Source: Pocillopora damicornis (Eukaryota). From it: a stretch of DNA of 64,000 bases. A program made the position numbers and the translations under genes. Every line of letters starts with the position of its first letter. Position 1 is the stretch's first letter. The stretch spans positions 62,001-126,000 of the forward strand of contig NW_020847100.1 in the NCBI RefSeq assembly GCF_003704095.1, read 5' to 3'. The notes below the pieces were generated by a model. It saw only the letters and a program-made list of their open reading frames with translations, ran no database searches and had not been told where the DNA came from. Below are positions 21,752 through 49,112 of the stretch, one piece after another.

Positions 21752-24700
21752 ATGCTTTTACTTCTGAAGTTCGCATGCGTTCTTTCAGTTGTTATTCTGT
21801 ACATGCCTCTGCTGTTCGTTTGCAAGTCAGTGTCCACGACCGTGAATAAAAAGCCAAACTCGCGAAGAACAAATGGCTGTAAGTACTAAACTTGAATAAG
21901 ATACGTAATCCTCACATGGTGAAATCATTCTGAAAGAAAACACGATTATCACAATTTAAACGATCTGTTGGAAGACAGACGCATATATGACATCAACAAT
22001 GAAAAAATTTTCTTCTTTATTGCAAAAAACAAATTGATTCTAAGTTGCTGTGGGTCTGTTTGGTAATAGATCACAAAAGACGTCATGACACGGTAAGAAC
22101 ATCTGTAACATACTCAACTGCGCTTTGTGTGCCACTTTTTTGTTTACCACATTTTAATGCCATCTGTAATCTATAACTAAACAGATGCACAGGTGAAATA
22201 ATTTTGAAAGGATTTACGATAATCCCAAACTGGTGAATAAGATTCCCTAAGCAGTCGTTCAGTTGTTGTGCCAATTCTAGCAGATAGTTCAGGCCGGTGC
22301 AGCAACCAAGGTGAATAAGGTCGTCTTCTGCATTATTTGTCTCTCAATGCTAAGAGTTGTTGTAGAGGTTAAAGAAAGAAGGTTTAATAGGACTCGGGTT
22401 TATAAGTGTCTCAATAGACCAGTTGTCGTTGAAATATATGTTTGGTATAATAAACTAATACTTGATTACGTTTTATGCCATTTTTTGGTTCCCGCCCCAA
22501 AATAGAACCGACTTCAATTAAGCATCTTTGTGGATTGCAAAAGGTATCTGAGAGCACATAAGAATAATTCTAATTGTGCTCTTTAACCTTTTTCATTAGA
22601 TGTGGAATCTTGCTTTGATACTGAGCCAGAACGTTGCAAGAATTTCAAATTTTACTGCCTAACGCGATCTCAGTTCATGAGCCAAAATTGCAAGCTAACC
22701 TGCCAGATGTGTCATCCAGGTGGGTGAGCCTCGTTTCAAAGCTTCTTTCATGAACTGACTGTAAACATCAATCCTCGATTTTCCTTGACTTTCCGAAGCT
22801 TTGTGCTGAGACTGGTTATGAACACCTCTACCACTCATTCGCCACCAATCAGAGGCTAAAGTGATTCCTCTCGCGAATTAGTTAGAGCGTTTTCCTGAGC
22901 TTTAGGTAGATTGCATGTGCTTACATCGGTCCCTTGAGGTGTTAATCTTTGCCCCACTTGGCCATCGAGATTTCTTCGATTTATAATTTTGCGATTCTCG
23001 ATCAAAATGCACTCTATGTGAAATTGCGTTCGCACAGGTCCTCATTTCCACAGAGAAAATGAAAATATTAGTACTTGCGAACACCAACATAAACGAGGCA
23101 CAACCCAGACCCCGTAACCCTGTACCACCCAGTACCATTGTGCTGACTGTGAATCTTTAGTGATGATTCTCCTTCCTAGCTGATCCGTGATTAATCTTTT
23201 CATATTACTTCTTAGGTGATCCTGTTTTCGATTTATCAAGCAAATGTGCTGTAGAGCTGGATAAGCGCCAGGAGGAACTTTGTATACTAAACGAATGGAC
23301 TAGAGTCTGTCCACATACATGCAAAGGCAAGTTACCTTTTACTTTGTAAGTGATATAGAATCTCGATGGCGGGGTATGGCTTCTACCTGTACTAGCTTCA
23401 GGCAGTTGAAACGCCCCATGATATTTCCACCAGGATGAACTGTAAAACTTTTTAGTAGGTATTTCCTCGTCCCCATGTTTTACAACTTCATTAAATTGAT
23501 GTTGTTTCAGTGAAAAAATTTCACGACTTATCGTGCAGTGACGACATCGATAGTGGACCCAAAGAGCGTGATGCATGTGCGTGCGTGCTTTCATTGTTTA
23601 TTGTCGATGTTAATTTCTGCTTAAATTCGCTCGTACTGAGAACAGTTGGTTTTGAAAAGTAGACCATGTTAGTGAGGTTCTCTTCTCCTCTGAGAAAACA
23701 CACAAAATAAAAGTGAGTCATCGTTCAACCAGCTTGTTTGTTTGTTTGTTTGTTTTGCCATTTACAGAGTACATCTGCGCTGACAAGGAGCAAGATTGTG
23801 CAAGTTTAGCGAGTCGCAATGGCTGCCTTTTACAACATGCGTACATGACAGAGAAATGTATGCTGTCATGTGCCATGTGCACTCCAGGTATAGGTCAAAA
23901 GTCATTTTGCTGACCTTTTTGGTTTCTGGGACCTTTTCTGTCATTTTCCCGAAGTGTCAACTTTTGGAATTTTAGGATGCTTTCTCAAGGCTTAGTTTTA
24001 TAGAGGCGGCCAAAAGGTGTCTAATGCTGATGTTCGCTCATAACAATTATTTACCGAGGACGAGATGATTAATTGTTTTAGTATCTACCACACATAAGCA
24101 AAAGAAATTAGTTCATTTCTGTCAGTTTACCAAAAATTGGTCGGAAAGTAAATTGTTGACGCGAGATTTCGTATCTTTGGCTGCTCGGAGGTGAATAGTG
24201 ATAATTACAAACGAACCAGCCGAACAAAGTGCGTGAAAAGTACCATTCACCTGTGTGTTATATACTAATTCTTGGTATAATTCTTCAATCAACCGTACTC
24301 TAACGTTATCATCTTTCTTACACTATCTGCACATGAGATTTTTAAAGAAGGTATCGATTATAGTACCGATCTTGAAGAGCACCCAACCGCGAATAAAAAA
24401 AATCCTTATACGGCACTTACGAAATTCTTTACTTGTCTTAAGCCCATGAAGAACTATTTTTCCCATTTAATTTTGACTTCCTTAGGTAATACTGTGATGG
24501 ACACAACCAGTGAGTGCAACCCTAAACAAGATCTTTGTCGAACTGACTGGGAATGGAGAAGTATTTGTCCACATACATGTAAAAGCTATATTCAAAGTCA
24601 ACCACAAGTATCAGCACAAGTCGTGCAACCCCAGGTGCAGTCAGGCGCGGCAGTGCAACCTCAGCAACCAGTTGCTAATTATCCCGCACTACCAACTGTT

Positions 24701-26330
24701 CAACAGCTCCCGACAGCTGCTCAAACGCAGCTACAGCAAACAGGCGGGGCAGTGCAACCTCAGCAACCAGTTGCTAATTATCCTGCACTACCAACTATTC
24801 AACAGCTCCCGACAGCTGCTCAAACGCAGCTACCGCAAACAGCGCAATTGCAGCCTCAAGCCCAGCACCCTGGCCTGGTCATTCAGCCACAATTAAATTC
24901 TGCTCTTCAAGCTGGTCAGGTGGGCTCCGTGGTGCAGCCTGGTACCATGCAGCCACAAACACCTGCCGCAGCCGCTCAGCAGATAAACCCAGGTATACGA
25001 ACCAATCAAATACAAACACAGACTCAAATAACTCCTCCGATAAACCAAGAAGTGCAACCTGGACAAGTACAACCTCAAGTTCAACAAACACTTCCTCAAG
25101 TGAACCCTGCAGCACAGACTGCCCAAAATTATCCTCAAGTGCAACAAGTGCAACAGGCAGCCCCCCAAGTGAATCCAGCTATTCAACCGCAGGCCCTTGC
25201 TGTGCAACAACAAGCTCAGCAACCTTACACTCTACCAGGTGTATCTCAGTACCCTAATGAGGCACAAGTTAACACGGGTAAATCTTTATTGTAAATACCA
25301 TATGACTCAGCAAACTATATAGGAATGTAAAATAGTTTTGAATATAAGGTTAAATTTTATTATTTCATAGGCCTTATATGGAGGTAAAAAAGAAAATGTG
25401 ATCTCTAGTGATTACAAATGGAAAACTATTTATATCTGGCTGTGATGGCCCCAAACAAAGAGTCAAAAACGAGTCAAAGGATAAATATTCTCACACTTTT
25501 GCGCAACCTATTTTAATTACTTTGGTTAACTCTAAGGTTAGTTACAAGGACTAAAATAGGACTTCATCAGGAACTACATTGAGATATCTAATATAAGATA
25601 TGATGGATATGCGAGGTATTCGTTAACAATGAAGAGGAAATACTGTGTGCAGCGGGTCTGTTGAGCTATGGTTGAACCTCGGCATTACTAAACTAGGGAT
25701 CCAGAGGCCAGTTTCAAGCCTGTAATTCAATGTTCTACTACAGGTCAGACCCATCAACCATTCTTACAACAGCCTCAGCCCGGAACAGTTCGAGGACCAA
25801 CAGAACGAGAGAAGGGACCTGAGAAGTCAAAGTCTGCCAAAGTAACTCCTGCGGAGGAGACAAGCCAAATGGGAAAAATGGCCAAAAAGAAAGAGAATAA
25901 GAAAAATGTTTCTGCCAAAAAGACTCCTGAAGAGGAGACAGGAAAAGAGGATAAAATGGTCAAAAAGAAAGGGAATAAGAAGCATGATTCTGCCAAAGGG
26001 ACTGCTGCTAACGATAAATTGAAAGTGGATAAAATGGCCGAAATGGAAGATAAGGAGAAAAGTGATTCTGCCAAGGAAACGGCTGTAGAAGAGACAGAGA
26101 AACTTGATAAAATGGCCAAAATGGAAGATAATAAAAAAGATGATTCTACCAAATGGACTGCTACAGAGGAGAGAGGGAATGTGGATAAAATGGCGAACAA
26201 GAACGAAAAAAAAAAGAAAGATGATTCCCAAAAAGAGTTGAACGTTAATCTTGGAGGTGAAGCAAAGAACAAAAACCACAAGAAGACAAGGGAATATGAA
26301 GATAGAGCTCAAGTAAAGGAGAGCATCTAA
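21752..26330 (+). CDS. Secreted ShK-array protein A: SP-(ShK-ShK[4Cys])x2, Gln/Pro-rich region, Lys/Glu 26-aa repeats; about 618 aa
   Basis: Exons 21752-21878 (MLLLLKFACVLSVVILYMPLLFVCKS), 22600-22719, 23216-23326 (GC donor), 23768-23887, 24486-25277, 25744-26330. All introns are phase 1 and the total of 1857 nt is in frame. Probable UTR exon ends at 21134 (aag|gtaag). Confidence 0.85.
24040..24272 (+). repeat. Interspersed repeat copy (intronic)
   Basis: Shares tcggaaagt..a...ttgacgc...gatttcgt, ctgctcggag.tgaa and acctgtgtgt.atatatac with 45690-45960. Confidence 0.6.
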
Positions 26331-29300: not shown

Positions 29301-30639
29301 GAAGACTCGAGCATAAGTTGTTGCAAGAGTCAAGTGTAAAGTTTGAGAAAGTGAAATGTTGAATGTCCAGTTCGCACAACTTGGCGCTTATTTGAAACTC
29401 TCAGTTACTGAGTTTCACCTAAAATAAAAGAAATATAAAGTAAAGAAGAGCAAGCAAAGTCATCTTCTGAAAAAATATTGGAACTGTCACAGAAAATTTG
29501 GTTTTGAGTAATTACCCCCCAGAAGGTCGATGACGTTTGCATAAGATCATTGATCTACTGAAGGGTCCAAAGTGACACCTAAAATTCACAACAAGCAAAA
29601 GGCCTTTAGAACAAAAAGCTGTGGGTGTATTCAAGGTGAGATGATATCTTTAATACGAAGAATATACACGATATCACGGATGGTACCGTTACTTTGTTCT
29701 CTTGCAATCATTTCTCGGCCATTTCGACAAAATTAAGTGAATGACATAACCTTCCTAAGATGCTATATAGGAGTCAATTGCTTGCTTTGATTCTATTAAG
29801 TCCAAATTAGGAAACTCTGACCTCATTATAGTAATAATCATGTGAAACTTAAAAGAAAAAGTAAATGTTCCGGAGATCTATTACTCTTTCAAATGTTCAA
29901 TTGTGAACATAAAAGTGTTTCAAATTCAAATTGTGGCACTACCTGTCAAACCTAATAGACGGTGGCGGATTGGATTCATGTACTAGATTTTCAAAAACAT
30001 TCAAAATTTCAAATTATTTTGAAATGCTTTGGTCCAAAGAGGGGTTACAGAGAATAAAAAGGAATTCCATCCCGTAGAAATTATATGATGATCCAAGTTC
30101 ATTTTGTCTGGTTCCGAATCAATTTCATGATTAAAATGGTGCACTTCTGAAAATCAAGCAAGATTCTAAATGTGCGTTGTTTCCTCTTAAAAAAAAAAAC
30201 TAAACTAAATTTCCACAAGCAAGTTTGTTTTGTGTCGTATGTTTTTTATAGAAAATTGCTTGTTGTATCCACAAACAAAAAAAAAACCTGCCAGCAACTG
30301 TAAATTCTCAAAGCTAAGTAACTGTACAAGACTGCTCTGAAATTTCCACGGGAAAGTGTCCTCAGTAAGTCATCTGTACTCGCTAGTTTCGCCGACGCCA
30401 GGATTGTTCACGACAACTCTCCTTTTGCAAAAACTGTATGTTAATAATTTAAATCGCCAAAGATAAATTTTCTGCTGATTATCGCAAATGCTTGGAGTTT
30501 TCACTCTTCTTGTCCAAGTGGAGTCTAGAGTTTGGAGGAGTTATTAGCTTGCAATTGTTAAATTAACTAACTTACTAACTAAACTGACTAAATACTTCAT
30601 AAGCAACTGCTGTTCTTTCTTTATAGAAGGCAAGTGGCA

Positions 30640-33221
30640 ATGAAATCAACGGTGGTTTTTGTTTTGTTGACGATATTCGGCTCCTTGTGTCAAGGAAAGC
30701 CTGTTGAAAAAAAGAAGGCTGCGAAATTGAAGGATAAGCCACAAAAAGGTATGAAAATACCAAGTCCTGAAACGTGATTGTTGTGTAAGGCTGACCTAAT
30801 TTTGTGCTACATCAAGATGACACGCTTTGGTTGTTAAGTCTGTATTTGAGGTTGCTTGACGCGTACATGCAAGAGTTTGCAGTAGGGTATGGTTATGAGA
30901 AGTTCAAGTCTTTGATTTGTTTTGGTTTCTTTTTGCTTTTGTTCTTCAGACAGCGTGTGTTTTGACAAGGATGTGAGATTCTGCAAAAAATGGGCGCCCC
31001 TGGGTTACTGTGCGAAAAGCCATTCTGTCATGTCAGGGAAATGCAAGTTAGCCTGCAAAATGTGTTCTCCAGGTACGAAGAAGCAAATAAAAATTGGTTT
31101 GTTCTTGCAGTACACTCATTCGTCCATTTATTTCCTCATTCATAGATTGCCTTAAACTGCTTGGGCGCTTTTCAGTATAATTAATGTAGTTATCAATCTT
31201 GGTGATTAAGCGTACTATCATAATCGGTCGTAGGTTCAATAATTCTTTATTATCCATCTACATCAGTAATCTTTTAAATGCGTTTAATATGCTCAGCTCA
31301 CTCGTGTATACATTGTTTGCGATATCGAAAAAAGCAAATATTTTCCGAAACTAAAGCATGTAACAAACGATCGAAGAACACGGAAAGGGATCAGAATTAT
31401 TTCTCAAATTTTTTCTCAGCCTCGAGGTCTGACTAATCATTTTTTTCTTAGTCTTTCACTGCTACGTTCATGAAGTAATCCTTGGACATTTTACATATTG
31501 TAGGGGAAATGCTAATGGATGACGACAGCAGATGCAGCAACTGGAAGAGTTCTGATTTTTGCGCCAAAGCAAATCATCAGCCTTATATGTTTAAACACTG
31601 CAAGTTTAGTTGCAAAGGGTTTGTTGCTTTACCATCCGTCCCTGAGAAGAAACTTGGTGACACCTTTGGAATGGGTGGACGATACGGACAACAGCCAATG
31701 GCTGGAAGGTTTGGTCAACAGCCGTATGGAAGACCACCATATGGTGCACAACCAAACATGCAACAACAATATGGTCAGTATGGGCAGCAACCCTACGGAC
31801 AACAGCCTTATGGTCAGCAACCCTACGCTCAACAGCCTTATGGGCAGCAACCCTACGCTCAACAGCCCTATGGGCAGCAACCTTACGGACAACAACCCCA
31901 ATATGGACAACCATCATTTGGTCAGCAGCCATCGTATGGCCAACAAGGAATGATGCAACAGCCTTGTGGTCAACCTCAAATGACTACGGATCCTTGTGCT
32001 CCTCCTTGTCCACCTCAGCCACCTTGCGGTCAGCCACCGTGCCCACCACCACAACCACAACCCCCATGTGGAGGTCCACAGGCGCCTCTGCCTCCCCAGC
32101 CACCAGCTCTTCCACCACCACCACCAACGGAAGAAAAAGAGGGAAAAGAGGAGGAAAAAGAAGAAAAGGGAGAGAAAGAAGGATCGCTGAAGCGGCCACC
32201 TGCCGTTGACGCCCGCCGTCCTCCACCTAGGCAGCCATACCGACCTTACCAGCCTTATGGAGCTCAAACTCCTTACGGCCGCCCACCATATGGACAGCAG
32301 CCACCCTATGGACAGCAACCACCCTATGGACAGCAACCGCCCTATGGACAGTCGGCATATGGACAGGCTGGCTACCAACAACCCTACAATCCATACGGTT
32401 CAGATCCCTATGCCCAGCAACCATCTCCTTACCAGCAACCTTCTTACCAGCAACAACAATATTATGGACAAAATAGGCAACCTCAAGCGCCAGTCCAGCA
32501 AGTTCCTCAGCCAGCACAACCTGCACCTGTTGCTCAGCCTGTCGCACCTGCTGCTCAGCCCGCAGCACCTGTTGCTCAGCCTGCCGCCCCTGCTGCTCAG
32601 CCTGCCGCTCCTGTTGCTCAGCCCGCTGCACCCGGTAGGTTAAAGTGTCTTTGCCCTGCCACACAATCACGTCCCTTCAACCTTCCACCTGCGTCTATAT
32701 GTCTGATCATCTGTTTCCCCGCTCCTTGTACCATTTTTCTATCTTCGTTTACCCCTTCCCTCTTTTGCACCTTTCCTACGTCCATAGAGCTAACCAACCA
32801 AACTCTCCAACTTCCTATACCCTTTCTGCCTTCCTTAGAAGCACCCAGCCTTCCTTCCTTCATTTAGACTCTAAAGGACTCAAATTCTGATACTATTCTA
32901 AAGTTCCTTGTTTATCATCGAAGGGTTTTCAGTCATATTCTTGCATGCAGTTTCATTTAAGATAGCTTTAAAGTACCTTACACTCATCAACATCTCTCTT
33001 TCTAAAACTCCTTAGTCGGTCCGGCGGCTGGACCCGCTGGTCCCGCGGCCCCTGAACCACAATCTGATTTCGCGCAACCGGGAGGTCAAACGTATGTCAT
33101 TCAACATCCTTGGCCAGGAACAGAAGGTCCACTCACTATCAAGAAGGAAGGTGTAGAGCAAAAGAAAGTAGAGCCGAAAAAAGATCTAAAGCTGGCTGCT
33201 GATGAAGTAGTAGTGGCATAA
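30640..33221 (+). CDS. Secreted ShK-array protein B: SP-ShK-ShK[4Cys], YGQQP repeats, Cys/Pro block, Glu/Lys block, YGQQPP, AQPAAP repeats; about 522 aa
   Basis: Exons 30640-30748 ([21 protein letters not shown] signal peptide), 30950-31072, 31504-32634, 33016-33221 (TAA). GT-AG phase-1 introns; 1569 nt in frame. Confidence 0.88.
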
Positions 33222-35572
33222 GTTTTTAGACTTTTTAAGGTAAATAGTCCGCTTTATCGCGAACCTCGAGTTTTCCGCCGCAATTTTTTAATATGTGAAA
33301 TGCGGTCGTATTCAAATGCATTTGGTCTTTATTAAAATTACCTTTTCGTTTATAAGACCTTATAACCTTGAGGGAAGCTTTATAAAGGAATTCATGATTT
33401 TCATTTGAAATTACCTAATATTTAGACTCGAAAGATGGATTTTGATCTCTTTAGAGAGTTATTTTTATCAAATATGCCTCGTAAGTGTTATCTATTGCAG
33501 TCCTCGAATAAGTGTCTGGAGTTATCTGGAATTCTTTGGTTTTGCTTCATTTTTCACTTTGGTGAACTCCTTCTGCATTTTGAACTTATCAAAAAGACAA
33601 CTTAAAAACTTGGAAACTTGCCTTTTTTTTTTGCGTCCGTGGTAAGACATTCTCCTGTATTCATTAAGTGTGTGAAGCTTAGCTTTTTAGATCGATCGCT
33701 TCAAATTATTTTTAGACACGTTTTCATGAGACTCAGTTGAAGTATTTTTGTTTATTTTCAGGCGAAACACCAACGAATGACTCAGTTATGAGTTGCTAAT
33801 CGTTTATGACGCTGTACGCAAAAGTGTTGCGACTTCTCTTTGCATCTGATGAAGAAAGAGCTCGATTATGGCATGCGTATTAAGTTATTACACTTGAATA
33901 CACAGGAGCCTCAATGAATGATCGGCTGCATCATGCTATATTCCTATCAGTCATTTTTATTTCTCCTAAATGGCAAGACGAATGGTCTTTTGATTCAAAG
34001 ACTACTTTTATCTTTTAAAAAATAAATCACCAAGACTGAAGAATTTTTTTTATTTTTGTTATGTGCGTTCAACAACCAACAAAACTGGAGTTCAGTGACA
34101 TTCTTGCACATTTAGTTAAATCTTATGTTTCCACTGTCTCGCTCAAAAAAATTCACCAGACGTATTTGTCAATTCAGACGTTGGCTTTTTTTGTTTTTAA
34201 ACTCGCAAAATAGAATCTAAGCATAAATTAAAATAAAGTTAATTTCTTCCTTGAGTTCTTCATTGATTAATGCATCGGAATCTAAATTCTCCACATCGGC
34301 TTGAAGTACGCTTTCCTTTTCCACCCACTCTGCGTCGCTCACCAGGGCTTTAAGCCATTGTTACGTTACACGATAGCGGATATGGCACTGAATTCCCCCA
34401 TCCTTCAACTCCAAACCTGGGTTATTCGGTGAACTAATTTGCATTGATGGTACTCATTCGTACTCATGATNNNNNNNNNNGTGTTGATCAAGAACAACGC
34501 AATATGTCGTCTAGGGCTCAAGTCCAGACCCCATCGATCAAGAGTCAAAAGACAGCTGCACGTCTCCGTCATCAGTATGAATTTCCTTGGGAAAGGGAAA
34601 GACTTTGATATTTATTATGTGACTGAATTATGCTTTGGAGGAATATCCGAATAAGTTGAACCACCAGTTTTTTCCAACGAGGTACCTGTCGACATGGAAA
34701 AAAAACGATCGCAAAGATTTTCTTCATTCAGTTGAAGATGTTGAAACTTTTAACCGTGGTAATCGTTTTCTGGTAAGAGTCCTATACTTTATATTACTCA
34801 GGTTTTAAATCAAAGTGTCGAGGGAACAAGACAGGATAATGGCCTTAATTCAGCTCTTTTCTTATGTTTCGTCTTTCACGATAAACGATTTGAAAACATG
34901 GCGTGTTCTTAGTTGCTGGCTTTCATAGAATCTAAACATTTTCTTTAAAAAATGAATATAAACAAGAAAGAAAAATAATTTGTCATGAATAGCAGGAGTT
35001 CTTAAAACCCAGAAAAACACAGCCTAGATTTTGGAATAAATATAAAGTAAAATTGGCTTACTGTGTTTTTATAATAAGAAACTTAGAGAGGTTTTCAACT
35101 CATTGCTTGTAAGAGGCTAGCACTTCACCACGGTTCCACCAAACAAATGTTTACGAGGATTCTATTTCAAAACGATAAATTCTTTCACACTGCAGTTTTG
35201 TGATAGGTAGCACCTGTCAAATCTATCCACGCAAGGCTGACCGCTTTCATTGATTCGTTCAATTCGACGTGGATTTGTGTTCTACAAATTATGAAGTAAA
35301 AACTAGCTATAGACGGTAAGTTTTCTCTTTCTAAATAAACTAACGGGCTTCCAGCGACAGAAAGTTTCTCCTAATACGTGTTTTTCTTAAATTTATTAGG
35401 AACAATTTTCAAATTTTATTTCATGACTGATAAAAAAATTGTATATATATAAAATTGATCGATGAGAATTCAATTTACATAGACTCAACTATGGAAATAA
35501 AATAGAACGTAAGCTTTTTTCTATACAAACCTTTTTATTTAATTCTTCAGATACCACGAAACTTATGACGGG

Positions 35573-38500
35573 ATGGTTGAATGCGGACAAAAGACTCAAA
35601 ATGCTGTCTTCTCTATCATTTTATATGTCATTGTCTCAGGTACAGTGTAAGCAACAGTCTTGTGGTAGACCCACTTGTAAATAAACTAATGTGTTCCGGC
35701 GAGGAGATTAACCAACTGCTTATTCAAATTACAAACTGCCTTCTTTCTTACCTTTTCACTGCTGAGAACAGAATGTTATGGCAGATTACAATTTTGTCTC
35801 TTTTTAATTTTTCAGTTATTAATCAGCAAGATTGTCTCAGCTACGCAATCTCAACAATTTAAAACTATACGGTTTATTTAATGAGGTACTGAATTGATGG
35901 GAAAACACTCACATGGATGTTGTAACATTTGGACGTGCATCAAATAGAAGACTAGTTTCCCAAGCAGTTTCATTTACATTAGCGTTAGTACATTGCGTGT
36001 TATATTCAAAGCTAGCATATTTCGTGTTTGTTTGGTTGTTTCAGTATTTTATCTTTGTACGAAAGAAGCCGTGCAAGGTGCCCCGATAGCATTAGATGTC
36101 TCTCAAGGTAAGACATATTCAAAACCCAGTAATTTAGCTTAATTGCGTCATAAGGCTCTCGTCGTTAACTACACTCACAACCTTTCTTCGTGAATGGATG
36201 CTCATCTTTGAATTTCTCAGTATCTGTGGGTTTGATCGAAAGCAGACTCTGATGATCATTTGGGAGTTCTATCATTAACGTTGTTGTTGCTTTTGTTTTT
36301 TTGTTTTGTTTTGCTTTTTAACAATGGCCTATCTCGAACTCTCTAACTGTACTGTTTTCTACGATTAAAAAATACGCTCTATCACATAATTGTATCAGAA
36401 AAGGGGAAAGATAGATGACAATATCGTGTTGCTAAGTAAATGCGACCTAAAGACACTTTCTATTCATTGTACTCTTGATGAATGATTGACATTTTTACTA
36501 AATCAATCATATATATATATGCATCGTTATATATGCATCGTTACATGGGGTAGTCACGTCAAAACTTCTTTTCCATTTTATTGACCCTGTAGTTCGTATC
36601 AATCCACTGGAGTGTTATGATAGGGTCAAATCGTGCTCAAAAGAAGCTAAAAATGGATTCTGCGCGTCCAACTATCATTACATGATTGACAGATGTCCAT
36701 GGAGCTGCCGGTTCTGCAGAAAAGCTGGAGGTAATAAATCGATCATATTATTAAACGATAAGGCACTAGATTTTTTAAGTGACCAGCACTGGACCGGACA
36801 TGATACATTTTATAAGATATTCTTCCCTTGCGATGCTGACGTCAACGTAGTAGACAGAGAAGGAGCGTAATTTCAGGAGGCGATGTGGCTGAGTGATTTT
36901 TGTGCGCTGTTTCACTTGGAAAGTGGCAACAGTCAAACGTTTTTTACATCTACCTTCTCAATTAGATCTTTATCTCGGTGCCCCTATTCAACTCTTGAAT
37001 CGAGATCAAATATTTTTTTCTTCTACCTGCTCAAATAGATCTGCTTCTCGGTTGCACCCTTGTCAATTCTTCTGCAGCGGCCGTGTAAAGAAAACCAGTT
37101 GAACGTCATATCCAACTGGTTTACTGGGATTTACAACAATTTAGGTTTCGTTTGCTCCAATTGGATTTGTTTCTCCTTAGTCCCCGCTAAATTCCTCGGC
37201 TACATATTTCAAAGGCCAACTGGCTTCCTTCCTTCCACTGAATTAAAAATTAGAGGAATGATACGTTTGATTTAAGTGGGGTGCGTATGAACAACCTGGA
37301 CTTATGTAGCTATGTACACCTCTGCGGCGAGATGAAATATAAACTATTTAAAAAAAAGGGGAGTAAAAATTACCAAGTCTACGCTTTCTAACCATGTAAG
37401 GGCCAAACGGTTAAATTTTTGAGGGGTTAATCCCTGTATGGAAGGGCGACTCAAGCTGGAAAACCTTTCTATCGTCTCCTTGGATGATGCATATGATTGG
37501 TTGTTTAATCGTCAATGATTCGGCAATATTCTTGAACGTGTTAATAACTTGGAAGATTTGCTGAATTCATGTTAGGAGATACTGACAAATGTGAAGATAT
37601 CGATCAGCACTGTCCAGAATGGGTGTCAAACAATGAATGCGCGACGCGACCAGACTACATGGCTCAGAACTGCAAAAAGAGCTGCGAGATGTGTGGTCCA
37701 GGTGAGTTGCTTTTGACAATCCAAAGGTGTTTCTTTAATATCGTGATCCTAGCGGGCTCCTTGCAAAATGATAATAAATCGGTGAATAATTTTTTTTCGC
37801 AAAGAAAATCATAGAACATTCTTTTCAGAATAGCAATAAGAACCATGTTTTCTATCTGCTAAAAAACTATAAAACTGGCGTCTGGGAACGCTTTCCAGGA
37901 GTATGACTGATTGTACTGTATTTCATTCATAACAAGAAGAAGGTTTCTTCATTTAATATGTTCAAACTGTTTGTATTTTGGGGAATACGGATTAGGAGTG
38001 TAGCACCAAGAAACATTCTTCGCCCTATGAAGTATTGGATGGCTTTCTAGATCTCTTACGCTTGGATATGGAATGTTAGGCCATTAGTATGTATTAATGT
38101 TTGCGAAGGTTGTCCGCTAGTTTGCATTTCTATTGATGAAGGAATATGATTTAAGCAACTTTCTCAGAAGAATTAAAAACGGAACTACAGCCAAATCTAA
38201 GCCTTACCCTGATTCGTTCGTGGTCTATAGCATAATTTATCTTATCCCTAGTAGTTTTTGCGATTTCAAATTAAACGGCTCAATCGTTTTTAATTCTTGT
38301 TTCTATAGAAAGCGAGTACAAAGTGAGTGACTCGGAACCCAGTTGTCCAATCTGGGCCAAAGCTGGTTGGTGCCAGAAAAATTCAGACCTGCTTAAAAAA
38401 TGTCCGCACAGTTGTCAAAAGTTCGGTTATATGGGTGCAAATTCCATGGAAGAACGCTACATAACAGTCAACTTTCAGAATACTTCACAAGTAACAGCCA

Positions 38501-40311
38501 CAAATGTCACTGATTTTGCTGCACCGCCGCCGCCATCTGCTGCTATTCGTCCTCATTCAGAACTGGAATCGGTAAGACTTGGATATAGACAGAGTTAGTC
38601 ATAAGAAAAAGTGCATGAAGTTTTCCTCATCAAAAAAATGAATTGGCATTTCAGGCCTTTTAGTTCATTATTGCTGAGCTTGTCTGAGTTTCCAAGGAAT
38701 GAAGCGTCTAGTAGTACGGTACTATATTGCCATTCGTCCTTGACCCCTTGAGAACAAACCCATGCATAGTTCTTTAAGATTTTCTGACAGTTTGCTAGTT
38801 TTTATCGACAGTCTTGGGTGGAGAAAGACTTCGCCTCGCTCATGGACGCATCATTTAGCTTCACCAAAAAAAAAACACTTTAAGATTGTAAATTTTGCAA
38901 TTTCGAGTGAAATCTCGATTTGCATGTGAAGGTAATTTTAATCTACAGTTTAATTCTAATTTATGTTTTATTTTCCCGACTCAGCTTCCTGCCGACCTGA
39001 AGTCGGTTCTCGAAAAGGAATGGTGGAACTCAAAACTGTTACAACTGACTCAAAAGCAAAATGAGTATGTGACTCACCCAGAGCTACGCCAACCTTCTTT
39101 TCCACTGTACACGAACAGCTCTGCTCAGTCAGGTAACAACACTCTATTAGGAAGAAAACAGATCAACGGATCCCAAGTGCTAACAAACTCGACAAGTTCA
39201 CAAGGGTTCATTAATCAGTCATCAATATTGCAAGGTACGTATACAATATTGTCTCTACGGTTTTCAATTATATACCTCTCTTCCGTTTCTTCAACTGAAC
39301 GCCAGCTAAACCAGTTCCTTAGCGAGGCAATTTTGCAGGTTAGAATTTACTGTCGGTTGCTTGTTATGCGTAGAGAAAGGAAACCATTGCATAATCCGAT
39401 AAAATCTAATTAGCTTTGTGATATACGCGTTAATGATATTGCGAGCCTTTAAGTGAGATTTGCCCTTAATTATCTCCCCTTACACCTTCTCGATAAAAAT
39501 ATAACGATAATCAAGAAATCACAGCAAAACCCTCAGTTGTATCATTTTTACAGGTGGAAATAAACAAGAACAGTTGAACGAACCTCCTGCCCCTGCTCCT
39601 CCTCCTCGACCGTACGACTCTCTTCTTCCACAACTAGCCGTCAGTGGTCTGACATGGAATGGTAAACGAAAAAAGGCGGAAGAAAATCAGGCTGACGGAC
39701 AAACAGCTCAGGAGACTGAATCAAGTCAAGACGTAATATGGAAAGAAGAAAAAGAGGAAGACGAGGATTTAGAAGCCGAAAATGGTCAACAAAAAGAAGA
39801 GGTTCCTGTGATAGTTTCAGGGAATGATGAAATTTCAAGTGGCCACGAACCGAGGGATGAAATGCTTCCGTTAGGTAATAAAGAAGTAAAGCACGCGAAA
39901 ACACACGAGAGCCAACTAACAACTTCGGGTGAGAATTTTGAAAACTATCACGAGAATACGGAAGGACACGTAACGTCTTCTTCTGGAAGTGGCGAAGAGA
40001 TGGATTCAGAAGAACAACATGATGTATCGATGTACAACAGTCCCGAAAGTACTCAAGAAGGCGATGTAAAACAGGTCTTTCCAGAAAGTGACATTTCTGG
40101 GAGCGGGCAGCATTCAGCGCAGGAAATTGATGACAATGAGACCAGCTCAGATGGAAGTAGACGGGAGGACAATGTCAAACAAGGCTTTCCCAAAAATAAC
40201 ATCCGTAGTGGCAGTCAGCTTTATAAACAGGAAAGTGGTGACTTTGAATCCAGTTCATCTGGTAGTAACCAGTATGAGGACGATGTAACGTTCTCTGGGA
40301 GTGGAGAGTAG
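35573..40311 (+). CDS. Secreted ShK-array protein C: SP-ShK-ShK-ShK[4Cys], Ser/Thr/Asn linker, acidic Ser-Gly tail; about 554 aa
   Basis: Exons 35573-35639 (start least certain), 36045-36107, 36593-36730, 37576-37701, 38309-38571, 38985-39234, 39554-40311. Intron phases 1,1,1,1,0,1 are consistent; 1665 nt. Confidence 0.8.
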
Positions 40312-43300
40312 AGCGTTAGGGGTAGCCTAAATATCTAATTTGGAAGAGTAATAAATAGACATTTCCTGATGCTCAATTATTTTCCATTTTGTCTGGTTCC
40401 TTTTATTAAGTTAAACGTAGTTTTGATCTTAAAACGGCGAAGCGGAGTTGAGAAATTTGATAGGGGGTTTGAAGCCGTTGGATCATTCATAAGTCAAAAT
40501 TAGTTCAATACACACGACAGAGGACAAGAAAAGAGATAAGATTTTGGCATTTCCACGTCATAAAACATTGTGAAAGGTACCAATATCGGTGAGCTTGCAC
40601 TGTATTGCTGACTATATTACTGTTTTTAGCTAATGACTTTGGAAATTAAATTGTAAATGAGTGTAATAGTAGACAGGAATATCAACCGGTTCAGATGTAA
40701 ATTCCAGAGGTATGTTTTGTACTAAATGTGATATGAACAACCAAAACGTAGTTAATTTGACCTACACAATCGTGATTATGCATGCTCAAAGCAAAGTTTA
40801 GCTTTATACAGATGATTTTTCTTCTTTTAATTTCAGGGTTGTACTATAGAGAAATCTAAAACGGCATATGGTATCAAATGAGTTTTTTGCTCTCTTGTTA
40901 AGAAATAAAATTTGCATCTCAAGCCAAACATGTCTTAATTTAAAAAGAAAAAAATTAAAGATGACTTTTTAGATTCAATAAAATCAAGAGATTAAACGTT
41001 TCACTCACCTCGTCAATAAAATGTAGCATGTTCCGTAGAACTGTGGTTTCCATGGCCGTTCATTTCAGAGACTAAATTGGAGATCTGAAATATCAAAAGC
41101 CCTGTTTCGAGCTCAGCGACAATCCATCATGACTACTTGCTTTTGTTCCTTAGGCCCGAGAAGAGAGGAATAGTATTCATTTGAAATTGAGGAGGAGGAT
41201 ATGAGGACTGGGAAGAGAGTTGAGCTCTAATCTATCCCTAAGTTTACCTCCCTAACACCGGCTCCCTGAGGCAAAGCTGGCTCCCTGAGTGGAAAACATT
41301 AATCGAATTATTTTTTCTAAATTTCAGCTTGGATAAGCACAAAATTTTTTTATGCGGTCTCAACTCTCGTCAGCTTTACCTCTGTGTTCAGTTGTTGACG
41401 GAGGTGGAATGAACACAAAAGAGAAAACAATAAAAACAGTAACTGAAAAACCAAAGCCAGACAAATCACTGACAATGCAGAGGTTGTTCGGTGTAGACTC
41501 TTTATTAGAAAGAAATCGCCATAAATCACGGACATGTGCCCCAGGGAGAGACTAGATGAGTCATGTTACATGTAGTGACTGACATGACTATACCTGGTTG
41601 ATCCGAATACGTGACACAGGTAGTTATATATTTTTTTTTTCCTGAACAGTATTGCAAGAAGGTAAACCTCGGAGGGTGGCTTTAAAATGCATAGGAAGAT
41701 CTGAGAAAAAAAGTACGATCTATAACGATAATAAAAACCTGGCATAAAAGAAATTAAATCAAACGTGGTACACTGCTATAGAAAAATACCAACACCTCTA
41801 ACTCCTGTGGCCTCGAAAAATTGATTCAGGACTTACTCTGTTTTATGCAGCGTAGATTGATCAGAACAGCAAGTGCAATCTTGTTCCAACTCTAACCATA
41901 CCATTTCTCTTTTGAAAACTACTGAAATTTGCCTAAATGATCCTGAAAACGCATTTAGCCACGTAAATATTGTCGGAAATTGTTATGTCCTTAAGAAATT
42001 TTATTTCCCACACTCCAAGCAAGAGAACGATTTTCTTATATAAACACCCCAGGGTCATGGACAACAATCGAAAAGCTCAAGAGACAAACTGATCTCAAAA
42101 TATTTCCCTGCCACTTTTTCAAGGATATAAGATATAATGATGAATGAGAACTAAAACCAGTTTAAATATTGTGGACTTATTGTTGGAAAAACTGGTATCC
42201 TAGGGACAAACAATATTACCAAAATACTCCTTTTTACCTGAAAAGCATTGTCAAAATGACTTTTCCCTGCTTCTTACGCGCAAATCAATACGACTTTTTC
42301 CTGCCTCTTACGCGCAAGTTACCGGTCGCGCGGTCTTATGACGCTATTACTCTAACCTTTATAATCACCTCTTCCAGCTCAATTAAGGCATAGCACAGTC
42401 TTAAACATTATAACTTAAATGCAAGCAAACTTAAGGAACAATTTCTTTTGCGACAATAATAATGGCATTAACTAAGCAGACCAAAGCTGTTATCAATTGC
42501 GATTACTTTGAGCAAATACCTGTCCAAAGAGAATTCTGTTTCACTAGCTAACGATACGTGACAACTTGACTTCAGGGCAATGCAGGTTTGACAGGTTTCA
42601 ATTAAAATCTTTTGTTTAACGTTAATTCCAGTGACTTTTAGACGTTTTCAACTTACTGCTTCGTCGAGTCTATTACATTAGGTAAGAAGAAGTTAAAACA
42701 GAGCGCTAGAATCTCATGGTTCCCACATTAAAAAGTGATCACTGTCGGCCATTATACCTGCATGCCATGGCCATTACTCTCTTGATATGCTTGGATAGAC
42801 AAAACTCTTTTTAGCTATTTGTCATATTCCCCCATCGCAAATTAATTTGCCATCCAAGAAGTATTTTTACGAGTTAATTGTTAGGGAGACAACTCGAAAA
42901 AGGTAAGTGTAACGAAACATTTTTATTTACTGGCTGAGTTTCGGAGTGGGCCTAAAACCCTTGAGTTTAAAGCGATGAATAAACAACTCATTACTGTTTT
43001 GTTCGCGAAAGGCTTTCTTTGTTACAGTCGAAGTGGTTTTGCTTAAATAGACCTTTGTCTTCCTTTTAACAAGATACCTTTCATTTTATCTTCCTATCAA
43101 TGGGAAGACAAAAAAGATAAACATCCTAAAGTCAGTCGATTTATATTAAGTTGCAATCGTTGGTGTAATGTTAATATTTTTCGTGGTATCGCTGATGGAG
43201 CTCAAGATTAAGATGGAATCATGAAGATAGGTCCACCAACACGGCGAACTCAAGAAATGATGCGACGCCTTAGAAAAGGCAAAGGGCTAACGTTCGAAAC

Positions 43301-43648: not shown

Positions 43649-44107
43649 AGGGGTTAGTTTTTTCATTAATTCTTGAGCAACCTTTGTATAGACGAAAGAC
43701 AACCATAAATAGAAGAGGGTAGTCAAACTTACTCGATTCTATTCCCCCTCCACCGGCAGATTTTTTGCCTCAATTTCTTTTTCGCAATGACAGTGTTTCC
43801 AACTTTCTACCGTCGCCGGGTGCTACTTTTGACTTGAGGAAATCTCTCTACCCTGGTTTACAACAGGGAATATACACATTTACAGAATAGCTTAGGTGGT
43901 TAGATCTGTCCTCTTGTGTCAGATCTCCCTCTCCACACGTTTGCCTATTCCCCNNNNNNNNNNNNNNNNNNNNNNNNNNNNNNNNNNNNNNNNNNNNNNN
44001 NNNNNNNNNNNNNNNNNNNNNNNNNNNNNNNNNNNNNNNNNNNNNNNNNNNNNNNNNNNNNNNNNNNNNNNNNNNNNNNNNNNNNNNNNNNNNTCCCCTG
44101 AAGAATG

Positions 44108-44110
<3 letters not shown>

Positions 44111-44143
<33 letters not shown>
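44111..44143. repeat. (TA)n microsatellite
   Basis: Directly visible, next to an assembly gap. Confidence 0.95.
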
Positions 44144-44147
<4 letters not shown>

Positions 44148-44659
44148 CAAAAGCTTTCTTTGCCTCTTAGAGAGAAAATTTTCAACATGAGGACATCTGA
44201 AGGAGTGGCTCACTAATTATCAAAAGCTAATTAATTATCATGCATCTGTGTCACTATCCGATTCTGATCGCCTGCAAGCAAGAATCCAACTTTGGTTGGC
44301 AGTGTTTTGGTAAAATCACCCCCAAAACAAGCATTTCCGAGCATCCATGATAGAACAAACAAGACAAATGATTGAATTTGGATGGCAAGAACTAATAAGG
44401 CCTTGGTTTATGTTACACGCCTAACCCCATGGCTCAGTTCGAAAGATAAGACGAGCCTCGACCTTGACAATCAATCGTTATCATGCTAAACCCATTCTAA
44501 CCGTTGTTTGATAACATTTGTAAACGAAAGGAACAATCTGTCGAGGTAACAACTCGCAACCCGAAGTTGTAATCATTGTCTGACAGTGACGGATTATTTT
44601 TTCAGGATTTTTGTCAAATAATCTATACTTTGTTTGCAGATAGTGAGCCGAAATAGAAG

Positions 44660-47600
44660 ATGAAGTTCGGTCTTGGTTGGTGCGCATTATTTATTATAGG
44701 CTTTATAGTCGCCTCCTCTGTCCTTGGTAGGTATCAATTTTCTATCCAGCGGCAGTAATAAACTGTCGAAGGAATCGATTCTACCGTCAAAATTTAAAGA
44801 GATCTTTAAACGTCGAAATTTCTTGGAGCAAAACCAAATGGATTGCTTTTTTGATTTCTTTTCACTTTTTTTTTTTATCAAAGTTGCTAATTTGGGTCAG
44901 GGAAGTTTGGCGACTGTTTAAATAGGAGAGGTTTTCCTGAAGTGGGTCAAACTAACTCTTCCGTTGAAGGAAAAGGCTATGATAACACATTGGACTTTGC
45001 TGCACGTTTCGACAATGCCCTTCACCGTTTCAGATTGTACAGTAATGGTACAAATTTGGGAAGAGGTGCCGAAAAACTTTTTCATGAGGTAATGGCATGA
45101 TTGAAACATGACTTAACTAACTGGGATGACAAAGATTTCCCTGTGACACTCAAAAGTCTTTAGAAACCTTTGTTTTGGTCATGCAATCAAAGATCTTCCT
45201 TACAATAATTTTCTAGCTAAAGAGAATTGCAAAATGTAGAATTCATCCCGAAGTGGAAAAAAGCGGAAACTATGTCAATTTGTAAATATTTGTAAATAAA
45301 TATCACACACTCTTCTAGGAACCGAGGAACAAAAGGGTGTATTTACTTCCGCTGATGAGCCAGGTTCTGGATCTGGAAGTGATTCCGGAAGCGGAGATGC
45401 ACTTAATGAGAGAGATGAGGAGGGGCAGAAAATTCTTGACTTGATGTCTACGATTCCTTACAAAGAAGGTAAATGAAATACAGTTAGCTCAATTTTTCCT
45501 TGAAAAATAGGGGCTGGGTCTTACTACACTCTTACTTTGCCTGTAGGGAACTATAAGGCTAATCTTCAAAACAGAAATTTCCGCGAACGTCACGTCTATT
45601 TTGGAAAAAAATAAACAGGGAAAGAAATCAATTGCCTATACCACGGAAAAAGTAAAACTTAAAAGCCTAGTATCTTGATTGTGCCATAATAAACAATCAT
45701 CCACCGAAGTGGAGGCAAATATCCATCAATTTTACTGACCCTGAGGTGAATAATTTCTATAGTATATACCACATAGAAACCCCCAAAATACTTATTTAAT
45801 TAGCGTCAATGTACCGAAAAGTTGTCGGAAAGTGAACTCTTGACGCTCGATTTCGTCTTCGACTGCTCGGAGATGAAAAGTACTTGCTGATCGAGTCTTA
45901 CCTAGCCAATCAACATGAGGTAAATGCATTATTTACCTGTGTGTCATATATACTATTAAAGGATATACTGCTCTCAGAAAAAAACGTAAACATTGATAAT
46001 CACTGACTAAGTTAACTAGTATACGTGTCAGAAACACGGATTGCAACATAAAAATAACTGGACAGAAATAAAGGAATATGCAAATAGCTGATAGAAATAA
46101 CAATAGAAAAAATAACAAAAATCTCTAAATAAACAAAGCCATAACTTCAGTCAGATATCCGCTATAGATGGATTGAATCAAAAAAAAAAAAACCCTTAAT
46201 GACTACCAGTGATATCTGGGCTATACAACCGTGCTAACAGCTTAGGTTTTTTTGCTGTTTTTGTTGTTCGTAGCTTATAACATAAAAAAATGTGAAGATA
46301 ACCCAGAAGTTGACTGTAAAGGCAAGACTTCTACGGAATGTCTAAAAGATTTTCATGATATGGTGCGAGATTGCCCATTATCTTGTCACCTGTGCGCAAA
46401 AAGAGGAGGTACGTGATTTGAATTGCATTTCTGTGCCATTACTCGCGGTTGATCATTCCAAACCATTTTAACCATGGGGGTAGAAGAGAAGTAATCCAAG
46501 TCTGAGTAAGGAACTGTCGTCGAGTTATTCAAGGGCCGACCTTTGTTTATGACAAGATTAGTATATTTTGCCACTCTGTGAGAAGCAGTGTTGGTAAAAT
46601 TGAATGAGCAGATGAATTTCGCAATGAATCAGTAAAACAGGGCTATGGAAAAAGCCATGAATAGACGAGTATTTGAAAAAAGAACTTCACTTACTATCTT
46701 TGTTGTTTTTTGCCTGGTATATTTTAATCAATTAAGAAAAACAATAACTTCTTCATTTTTTTAATAATACTTTGTTAGGAGCCACTGAGAAATGCGAGGA
46801 TCTTGATGAAAATTGTGACGTAGGGGTCCGCAGACGCAAATGTCAGCTACTTCCTGATTACATGATGCAAATATGTAAACTTAGAAAAACAATAACTTCT
46901 TCATTTTTTAAAAAATACTTTGTTATATTTTAATCAATCAAGAAAAAACAATAACGTCTTCATTTTTTTTAATAATACTTTGTTAGGAACCACTGAGAAA
47001 TGCGAGGATCTTGGTGAAAATTGTGACGTAGGGGTCCGCAGACGCGAATGTCAGCTACTTCCTGATTACATGATGCAAAACTGTAAACTTTCCTGCCAAT
47101 TCTGCGGCCCAGGTAGGAAAATCTGGCACCCATGATAAAAAAAACCAAGGAAGTGATAAAGTATGGTAAATCACTCTTCGACTCCATTTTCGTGAGGCTG
47201 AATTTCAAATACTACAGGCAATATTCTATTCCACAGCGCAGGAAGTAGTTTTTTTGGGTAGCGATTTGTTATCTATCCCATACGTTTGACATTGCCTTTG
47301 TAATGCGACTATACTTCTACTCTTAAGGTGGGAGTTCAATTAAGCTTTTGTATATTGATTGGGATTATTAGCTCAAATGAAAAGTCACAGGCTTGTATAA
47401 TTCCATGTTTGATTTAAAGTTATAATGAGCTTTTTTTAGAACCTCGAAGGAGAGAAACTGAAGAAAGATATACGTCAAATACCTTTTAAAAACCAGGAAA
47501 TAAGAAGCTTAAAACCTGTTTAACCTTCTTCCTTTCAGAGTCTGGGTTTGGAAAAATGGACAAACATCCCGTTTGCCCAATATGGGGAGAATATGGCTAC

Positions 47601-49112
47601 TGTCAAACAGACTCTGACATAAGGAGAGAATGTCCTCATAGTTGCACGAAGTACCATGGAGTCAGGCCAGCCCCCGAACCATATCCCTACCCCGTAAAGG
47701 CTCTGCATCCCTATCAATTCCAGCCTGGACAATATCCGATTCCTTCTGGGTACCCATATCCCGCGCGATACCCGAGCCCATATCCTTCTCCTTACCCGTA
47801 CCCGTATCCCTATCCATCTCCGTACCCCTCTCCCTATCCCTATCCATCTCCGTACCCCTCTCCTTACCCCCACCCTAACCCATATCCAACTCCTCATCCG
47901 ACACCAGCACCACAGGTAGGGTATTTTTTTTCGATGTGCTCAGGTCATCTTGTTCAAGTTAATTTGTTTTTTCAGGATTTTTAACTTTAAACCTGTTGTA
48001 ATAGGAGAATTTTGTAGTAAATTTTGTAGCGTAGCGGAGGGACATGGCACGCAAACAATAAACACCAGTAGGAGGGCAGAACTAAAACAATAAATTCCGA
48101 CGACATATTAAAAACCAGCCAATAAATTAGAGTACGAAATGATGAAATCTCAACTGGTTGACTGTAAGTTGTTGACTAAGTTACAAAAGAAGTAAAGACC
48201 GCAGCACTCTAAGGGCATTACTTGTAAATTTATATAGGCAAACTGTAACAGATTTTCCAAGAAGCCCCTTGAGTGATCTATTTCTGGGTTGCCTCGTTTC
48301 CAGTTTAAGGCATTCTAATGGGCTAAATCGTGTCAGATGAACTTTAAAAATCTCAGGCCGACATTTGAATCCAATCCTTTTTCTTTTTTCTCTGTTTATT
48401 TAAATTCCTCGCCTGCCCATGGTGGCATTTATCATCTGCATTTAAAAATGCCAATTGTTAATTAAACGAGCCAGCAACATGATTGAATCCTATAAGGACA
48501 GTTCATTTTGAATGTGTTTGAACGTATCTAAACGTATGCAATGTTCAGTTCAGTGAAATCAGCCTTGAAGTCGATAGCCACCTTAACTTTGAGGAACTCT
48601 TTCCTCCATCGTGCAGTAAGGATAGTTAATCTGGATTTTTGTTGCAGCCGAGTCCAGTACCCACACCAGTGCCCTCCCCAGAACCTTCTCCAGTGCCCGC
48701 TCCATCTCCTTCTCCAGAGCCCTCTCCATCACCAGCCCCGGCCCCTTATCCAACACCAAGTCCGGCCCCTAATCCAACACCAGCACCAGCTCCGGCCCCT
48801 TATCCAGCACCAGCACCGGTTCCGGCCCCTTATCCAGCACCAGCACCAGCACCGGCCCCTTATCCAGCACCAGCACCAGCACCAGCACCAGCACCGGCTC
48901 CTTATCCAGCACCAGCACCGGCCCCGTATCCAGCTCCAGCAGCGGCCCCTTATCCAGCACCAGCTCCTGCACCGTATCCAGCGGCGGTTCCCCCTGCAGC
49001 ACCTGCAACTTACGACAAAGGTCACAAGTCAGAGAAAAGCGAACAAAAGAAGCACAAGGACCATAAGAGGAAAAATCATGACTCGAAGAAACGCAAAGGA
49101 AGAAGAAATTGA
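44660..49112 (+). CDS. Secreted ShK-array protein D: SP, acidic GSGSGS linker, ShK-ShK-ShK[4Cys], Tyr-Pro/Ser-Pro and PAPAPY repeats, Lys/His/Arg tail; about 439-488 aa
   Basis: Exons 44660-44726 (MKFGLGWCALFIIGFIVASSVLG), candidate 44901-45047, 45319-45468, 46274-46408, 46987-47112, 47539-47915, 48648-49112. Phases are consistent. Exon pattern and motifs (KCED...CGP; CPIW...CPHSC) match protein C. Confidence 0.85.
46779..46882 (+). pseudogene. Truncated duplicate of ShK exon 46987-47112 (pseudo-exon)
   Basis: Near-identical acceptor and ATEKCEDLDENCDVGVRRRKCQLLPDYMMQICKL, then runs into duplicated intron sequence and an in-frame TAA; lacks the final CxxC and the normal donor. Confidence 0.75.

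Follow-up and report, generated by a model that had tools for sequence, protein, structure and literature searches.

Secreted proteins that combine ShK domains with low-complexity sequence have been described in nematodes. The mucins MUC-1 to -5 of Toxocara possess a signal peptide, a domain of low complexity and two ShKT domains and form the larval surface coat (PMC9477421), and the PHAT proteins of Caenorhabditis elegans, the genes of which also occur in local clusters going by their cosmid names, line the pharyngeal lumen (PMC2563036). The sharing of Cys-rich domains by proteins with differing low-complexity domains within one family is named in the title of Loukas et al. 2000 (cited in PMC9477421). 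The locus described here is found in the stony coral Pocillopora damicornis, in a 64,000-nucleotide stretch of assembly GCF_003704095.1 (contig NW_020847100.1, positions 62,001 to 126,000 of the forward strand), hereafter the window, to which coordinates refer unless stated otherwise. Positions 21752-49112 hold a tandem array of four genes, named A to D, in whose products a head of ShK domains is followed by a long tail. The four are paralogous, gene C is transcribed and spliced, and in other corals the order of the genes is conserved, as largely is the type of tail belonging to each. With slightly more confidence than doubt, the array is read here from its sequence as an old tandem cluster of four paralogous stony-coral genes for secreted extracellular matrix or surface-coat proteins, and not toxins.

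Like the ShK/SXC mucins of nematodes, the products of A to D have a signal peptide, paired ShKT domains and a low-complexity domain. They differ in that their ShK domains are N-terminal, in that the last of these lacks the first and sixth Cys (C1 and C6), and in the tail, which in place of a Ser/Thr-rich mucin domain is Gln/Pro-rich, Tyr/Gly/Gln/Pro-rich, acidic Ser-Gly or Tyr/Pro-rich, with only that of C being Ser-rich (14%). As ShK exons are mobile phase-1 modules, the nematode and coral genes need not be homologous as whole genes. The same coral family has XP_022806382.1 of Stylophora, a secreted, mucin-like ShK protein reportedly expressed specifically in calicoblasts of the adult and the primary polyp (PMC8913943); its two Pfam-detectable ShK domains and low-complexity region are what Pfam would see of A, C or D. 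On the question of whether such a family had been described before, raised in a first-pass annotation made from the letters of the window, the general idea of shared ShK/SXC domains with diverse low-complexity domains is already known from nematode mucins, and ShK domains without C1 and C6 and a mucin-like ShK protein in a pocilloporid are known too. New are the cluster of four genes, conserved across corals, whose tails have four distinct chemistries of a non-mucin kind, the terminal four-Cys (4-Cys) domain shared by all four genes, and a corrected model of gene C.

All four genes lie on the + strand, and the common plan proposed in the first-pass annotation was recovered by Pfam, a six-frame pattern scan and frame models. 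Each protein has a hydrophobic, signal peptide-like N-terminus, followed by one or two exons with a six-Cys ShK domain, phase 1-1 without exception, and then a last ShK-like domain with four Cys at the 5′ start of the exon that begins the tail (in C a linker comes first). A domain was taken as ShK/ShKT if it had some 35-40 residues and six Cys in the order C1..C2..C3..C4-x3-C5-x2-C6 and scored above the Pfam gathering cut-off, which is 20.9 bits for PF01549. Seven six-Cys ShK exons (within 22600-47112) and four 4-Cys domains were found, and six of the seven exons pass the cut-off with 22.2-35.6 bits. Such exons are abundant genome-wide, with at least 144 matches in the assembly searched (234.35 Mb, 4393 contigs; window C3735:62001-126000). 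Canonical AG/GT sites give open in-frame models of 581 aa (A), 522 aa (B), 554 aa (C) and 439 aa (D); the database searches were run exon by exon, and the joined models served for frames and composition. The models of A, B and D, with their predicted splicing, are frame-consistent and backed by conserved orthologues, and may hide further exons of the kind that RNA revealed in C. Two assembly gaps fall within the array, both clear of every coding exon of A to D. The gap at 34471-34480 is intergenic, between the stop of B (33221) and the 5′ untranslated region (UTR) exon of C, and that at 43954-44093 lies between the 3′ end of C and the ATG of D (44660), where it could affect the promoter or a 5′UTR exon of D. 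Contigs of the TARA Pacific metagenomes match the stretch at 92-99%, and a scaffold of a related Pocillopora lineage among them (L001, against window positions 29317-37327) is collinear with the window on either side of the first gap. Two further sequences, L007 from a species whose gene C exon is 56% identical and L012 from a more distant one, are used for comparison below.

Gene C is one spliced transcript of ~2.3 kb, proven by RNA contigs of four independent studies (that of run X2 being 1667 nt long), and 11 RNA runs contain 21-30% of the sampled words of 34481-40400, approximately the exonic share. The RNA is of whole colonies, and the RNA and DNA runs holding the stretch are labelled as coral or marine metagenome. 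The 5′UTR exon (34481-34771) is covered by an RNA contig over 34481-34772 and joined from 34771 to 35550 in runs X1 and X2; it may begin within the gap or on the far side of it. The first coding exon (35551-35639), supported by RNA joints and translation, has its ATG at 35573 and contributes 67 coding nt, the same number as in D. The signal peptide is divided over two exons, its first half being encoded by 35573-35639 and its second by 36045-36107, with joints from 35635 to 36041 and from 36104 to 36591 in 4/4 runs. Then follow, all present in RNA, the first six-Cys ShK exon (36593-36730, 24.9 bits), the second (37576-37701, 35.6 bits, 54% identical to its counterpart in D), and an exon with the 4-Cys domain and a conserved linker containing N-glycosylation sequons and a PPPP motif (38309-38571, 21.9 bits). 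The next exon (38985-39234) is known from RNA alone; it is rich in Ser, Asn, Thr and Gln, has no repeats, is joined from 38570 to 38984 and from 39232 to 39552 in 4/4 runs, and has a counterpart in L003/L007. The last coding exon (39554-40311), identified by RNA and composition, holds the acidic tail, and the 3′UTR runs beyond 40400. With the extra exon, what follows the 4-Cys domain within its exon is a conserved linker free of repeats, and the Ser-Gly tail comes two exons downstream. RNA thus upheld gene C as a spliced transcript and corrected its model in two places, the extra exon and the split signal peptide, and the earlier view that the 4-Cys domain and the start of a repetitive tail share one exon stands for A, B and D and fails for C. 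Three minor features of the transcript may be added: an upstream out-of-frame ATG at 35565, which would give a short upstream open reading frame (ORF), a 9-nt in-frame deletion in the signal-peptide region (35588) in run X14, and an A-to-G difference from the window at 36105 (Gln to Arg) in 4/4 RNA runs.

Gene A opens with an exon for the ATG and signal peptide (21752-21878) that ends in phase 1 and is predicted from its hydrophobic N-terminus, GT donor and frame continuity. Its two six-Cys ShK exons (22600-22719 and 23768-23887, both phase 1-1 and both scoring 22.2 bits) have orthologous exons at 2089-2157 and 2976-3050 of L007, and the exon with the 4-Cys domain and a Gln/Pro/Ala-rich tail with a 99-nt repeat (24486-25277) has its orthologue at 3826-5301, with the same head and a Gln/Pro-rich tail. 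The fifth exon (25744-26330), coding for a Lys/Glu-rich tail with 78-nt repeats and the stop, is placed by a 212-codon open frame and a phase-matched AG acceptor; this exon and its join to the Gln/Pro exon are the least certain step of the gene A model.

In gene B, an exon for the signal peptide and a Lys-rich linker (30640-30748, 99% identical to L001) is followed by a single six-Cys ShK exon of phase 1-1 (30950-31072, 22.9 bits), which forms a clade with its L007 and L012 orthologues (support 100/94). In the third exon (31504-32634) the 4-Cys domain is followed by YGQQP repeats, then by a Cys-Pro block with six Cys and one of Glu/Lys, and after these by a second block, of YGQQPP, and by AQPAAP repeats. 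The fourth (33016-33221), joined by a phase-matched splice, supplies the C-terminus ...ADEVVVA and the stop; L012 keeps this motif as ...AEEVAVA before its stop, and the B ORF of L007 ends otherwise. The L001 scaffold has a 1-nt deletion in an A-run of the last B exon, either a frameshift or an assembly error, and its first 1.9 kb hold a second copy of the 5′ region of gene C upstream of B, either a structural variant or a chimera.

Gene D has a 67-nt exon with ATG and signal peptide (44660-44726; hydrophobic N-terminus, frame model), a phase-matched second exon with an acidic Ser-Gly patch (45319-45468, EPGSGSGSDSGSGD), a first six-Cys ShK exon (46274-46408) that scores 19.2 bits, just below the cut-off, and has an L012 orthologue (support 100/93), and a second ShK exon (46987-47112, 24.8 bits). 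The fifth exon (47539-47915, 20.0 bits), with orthologues in the fragment P0061 and at 14770-15525 of L012, joins the 4-Cys domain to a Tyr/Pro-rich tail with YPSP repeats, and the sixth (48648-49112), taken from the frame model, contains PAPAPYPA repeats and a Lys/His/Arg-rich C-terminus; a basic Lys/His end is present in L012 too. A 208-nt tandem duplication (46718-47090, 1.8 copies, 94%) has produced a truncated copy of the second ShK exon at 46779-46882 (+), which matches a C/D ShK profile with 71.9 bits. As this copy keeps the acceptor but lacks C5, C6 and the donor, it is probably a dead pseudo-exon. An element of ~210 nt, 70% identical and probably a dispersed repeat, occurs in an intron of A (24062-24267) and an intron of D (45743-45955).

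The 4-Cys domains open the exons at 24486 (A), 31504 (B), 38309 (C) and 47539 (D). Those of C, D and B score 21.9, 20.0 and 19.9 bits with PF01549, and that of A gives no Pfam match. Aligned to the canonical ShK domain they retain C2, C3, C4 and C5; in all four genes and in all orthologues C1 is replaced by Met or Val (x-M/V-D-x4-C) and C6 by Phe or Tyr (C-x-K-F/Y). In ShK these two residues form one disulfide pair. The loss of C1 and C6 has also been reported in gastropod multi-ShK proteins (PMC6409789). These, the multi-ShK and M12-ShK proteins of Cumia reticulata, differ from A to D in being either proteases of salivary or venom glands or short proteins with several ShK domains and no long tail, and the loss there is probably independent.

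Since DNA comparison among A to D found no similarity save one shared intronic repeat, paralogy was judged at protein level. C and D are 46% identical in the 4-Cys domain and 54% in the second ShK domain and have matching exon sizes, so that they appear as clear paralogues, as had been proposed; A and B, 42% identical in the first ShK domain, look like moderate ones. Between the pairs, profile matches are at generic-ShK level, and when the first ShK domain of A was searched against the whole genome the two best non-self matches were the second ShK domain of C and the ShK domain of B. A tree was built from 37 columns of 70 domains, comprising 40 random genomic ShK exons, the domains of the window and their orthologues. 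Each orthologue group was recovered with strong support; among the 4-Cys domains, those of A, C and D came together (91/86) and that of B was left unresolved. Forcing the ten 4-Cys domains into one clade gave a likelihood above that of the free tree, and the AU test did not reject it (p 0.705). A single origin of these domains is compatible with the data, with weak support, and the shared Cys loss may itself drive their grouping.

The tails differ from gene to gene in the way that the first-pass annotation described, and their compositions are structural and proteoglycan-like. That of A is Gln/Pro-rich and then Lys/Glu-rich. That of B contains 25% Pro and 22% Gln, and its Pro-rich Cys-Pro block has six Cys at spacings of 9/3/5/4/8 and is followed by polyproline. 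The tail of C is acidic, with 13 Ser-Gly dipeptides, three SGSG motifs and 14% Ser, and protein D has its Ser-Gly patch (GSGSGSDSGSG) in exon 2, a Tyr/Pro tail and a polybasic end. The tandem repeats have periods of 99, 78, 30, 21, 18, 24 and 42 nt, all divisible by 3. Pfam searches of every tail exon gave nothing but a Serglycin match for D exon 2, sub-threshold at 15.4 bits against a cut-off of 30; word-based protein searches with the tail exons of A and B returned ORF fragments of coral metagenome contigs and no annotated full-length or named protein, and the ESM Atlas search with the B tail exon gave no usable match. Clustered Ser-Gly in acidic stretches is the classical context for glycosaminoglycan attachment. 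Serglycin-type proteoglycan cores share this feature with C and with exon 2 of D, for which attachment is putative, the Pfam match being below threshold.

Heads from close Pocillopora lineages share 99% identity, and the tails vary in length. Compared with the window, the B tail of L001 is shorter by three in-frame deletions (51, 6 and 513 nt) and differs by substitution at only 9 of 521 aligned nt, and the tail ORF of A, 282 aa in the window, is 315 aa in most TARA Pacific contigs (P0106-P0137). This last difference corresponds to one more copy of a 33-aa (99-nt) repeat (window 24642-24842), a repeat-number polymorphism.

In other corals, an exhaustive HMMER search with the 4-Cys exon of C found eight representative ORF fragments, 56-80% identical across the whole exon and terminating at the same splice donor; it also recovered P0061, an orthologue of D, and P0022, a C-like exon of greater divergence. 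The synteny check proposed in the first-pass annotation was positive for both L007 and L012. L007 has A-, B- and C-like genes with order, orientation and domain counts preserved, and L012 has B-, C- and D-like genes in the same order and orientation. The B tail of L007 (26% Pro, 20% Gln) keeps the block order and the six Cys of the Cys-Pro block, and in L012 the B gene has YGQQ repeats only, without that block. The C tail of L007 has 14 Ser-Gly and 5 SGxG motifs in an acidic context, and in D the window and L012 agree in the start (YPYP...ALxPYQ) and in an end rich in Lys and His. The tail type thus holds in every species seen for B and, in outline, for D, in the nearer species for C, and in part for A. 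As the tail types follow the gene across species, the tails are largely fixed; they had been thought interchangeable, and there is no sign of tail swapping. They are old and gene-specific, changing by repeat number. Further 3′ of the D-like gene in L012, an open frame at 17770-18522 has HPYPYPHPSPYP...SPYPSPYPSP at its end; no ShK exon was seen in its neighbourhood, and it may be the tail of another family member.

The reading of A to D as matrix or surface-coat proteins is favoured because they have no toxin dyad, no minicollagen or collagen features and an architecture as in the nematode ShK/SXC mucins. In such a coat the ShK heads would provide stable modules for binding or anchoring, a role proposed for the ShK/SXC domains of nematode mucins and for ShK-capped proteases, and the long, probably disordered tails would set the material property of each protein and be glycosylated or cross-linked into an extracellular layer. 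In B, silk- or glutenin-like YGQQP repeats would flank a Cys-Pro cross-linking node. The acidic Ser-Gly tail of C resembles a glycosaminoglycan-bearing proteoglycan core, and D would combine a Ser-Gly patch, an extensin-like Tyr/Pro tail, which we take to recall cross-linkable extensin-like proteins, and a polybasic end. Secretion, glycosylation, a structural role, the function of the heads and the site of action are what the proteins suggest by their make-up. For the site, the calicoblast/skeleton interface is a tentative first choice; the cnidocyst and the gland, mucus or general matrix are each somewhat more doubtful and on a par with one another, and other sites take up the remainder.

Several points weigh against this reading. 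Support from RNA is limited to gene C and to whole-colony libraries, and the cell-type placement, matrix presence and glycosylation of the proteins are putative. An AlphaFold2 model of the 4-Cys exon of C, made from a 12-row alignment, has a mean pLDDT of 51.6, too poor to confirm the fold. A profile of C and D does not rank the 4-Cys domains of A and B above generic ShK domains, which leaves architecture, position and a tree of poor resolution as the grounds for deriving the two pairs from one ancestor; the tree check that had been suggested for the heads accordingly came out as compatible with one origin and no firmer. The calicoblast protein XP_022806382.1 could not be linked by sequence to A, C or D. 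In L012 neither the acidic Ser-Gly tail of C nor the Ser-Gly exon of D was found and there is no A-like gene in the 10 kb upstream of B, and in L007 no counterpart of the Lys/Glu exon was seen after A, where the Gln/Pro block is kept. Finally, tandem paralogues often stay neighbours in slowly rearranging coral genomes without functional coupling.

The best-surviving alternative, unlikely as we judge it, is that A to D are structural components of the cnidocyst (nematocyst or spirocyst wall, tubule or matrix), B being a cnidoin-like elastomer and C and D chondroitin-type proteoglycan cores of the developing tubule. The YGQQP repeats of B resemble GXGQQ, an elastic motif that spidroin-2 has in common with cnidoin, where it is enclosed by Cys-rich cross-linking domains (PMC4321713). 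The six-Cys, Pro-rich block of B with the polyproline after it would suit such a protein, as B shares with cnidoin, CPP-1 and the minicollagens of the Hydra nematocyst wall a repetitive, disordered Gly/Gln/Pro-rich sequence combined with Cys-rich cross-linking elements (PMC4321713). The acidic Ser-Gly motifs of C and D point the same way, and cnidocytes and gland cells are where the majority of Stylophora ShK genes are expressed (PMC8913943, PMC8162421). Unlike those nematocyst proteins, A to D have ShK heads, and in a regular-expression scan none of the four contains a minicollagen Cys-rich domain (CxxxCxxxCxxxCxxxCC); nor do they have a Gly-X-Y run of five or more or a propeptide ending in Lys-Arg after the signal peptide. 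Moreover, the B orthologue of L012 lacks the Cys-Pro block, and a place in the cnidocyst is putative for all four proteins.

Somewhat less probable again is the view that there is no joint system, the genes being four old tandem duplicates with different low-complexity tails, active in unrelated cell types and roles and adjacent through the inertia of coral genome order. This would agree with the absence of remaining DNA similarity, with pairs A/B and C/D that are barely linked by sequence, with tail modules some of which vary by species, and with the L012 species, in which A is not adjacent to B. All four genes nevertheless have the same derived feature of the head in common, and order and orientation are preserved in two other species with a gene C exon only ~55% identical, an observation that fits separate roles equally well if rearrangement is slow. 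At the other extreme stands a version of the matrix reading that we hold to be improbable, in which A to D would be regulated together as a stony-coral matrix cassette of ancient linkage, their products being secreted by one cell type (e.g., calicoblasts or desmocytes), docking via the ShK heads and condensing into an adhesive or into the organic layer where tissue meets skeleton. Gene C would then supply the polyanionic glycosaminoglycan-bearing core, A and D the Tyr/Pro- and Gln/Pro-rich cohesive proteins with polybasic ends, and B an elastomer with a disulfide node.

Very improbable is a role as precursors of bioactive ShK peptides (neurotoxins or antimicrobials of the damicornin/AmAMP1 type) with active heads and tails serving as carriers or pro-regions. 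In its favour, the genes form a cluster, an arrangement common among toxin genes, and both the K+ channel toxins of sea anemones and the ShK-related antimicrobial peptides of corals are built on the ShK fold, according to work cited in PMC11269664. Against it, 0/11 domains have a Lys-Tyr or Arg-Tyr dyad, or any K/R-Y/F pair, between C3 and C4, no dibasic processing sites flank the ShK domains, the terminal domain is minus one disulfide, and the tails make up most of each protein (439-581 aa) and keep their type in every orthologue found of B and D and in nearer species for C and A. The first-pass annotation had likewise preferred a co-secreted material to a simple toxin cluster, and the genes, with their large, apparently secreted products, are not simple toxin genes.

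As matrix or coat proteins, A to D would be a compact, conserved set of candidate parts for a coral extracellular material, be it the skeletal organic matrix, a tissue-skeleton adhesive, a capsule wall or mucus, and the unique tail of each gene offers a sequence handle for antibodies, proteomics and in situ probes. The cluster shows that coral ShK domains, beyond being toxins or protease appendages, are also the heads of low-complexity proteins, as in nematode surface mucins. The cluster also presents a clean case of a terminal ShK domain losing the C1-C6 disulfide in a coordinated way that is kept across species, and the corrected gene models, including the RNA-proven exon of C, are of practical use.

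Outside the array, a gene on the - strand (5545-9105) combines several ShK exons (8235-8309, 6149-6223 and 5557-5637) with a pair of fibronectin type II domains (PF00040, 104 bits). The exon at 6149-6223 codes for a 4-Cys ShK-like domain as well, without the Met/Val and Phe/Tyr replacements of A to D. Downstream, a 907-nt inverted repeat (54863-55769 and 56076-56982, 97% complementary) is symmetric about an assembly gap (55976-56075) and could reflect palindromic misassembly or else a hairpin-like duplication that is real; a 76-codon open frame with no Pfam match lies in each arm. The remaining flanking genes are unrelated to the array, namely an F5/8 type C (discoidin) domain exon at 57872-58354 (-, 59 bits) and, at 63260-63604 (+, 33.7 bits), exon 1 of a short-chain dehydrogenase.

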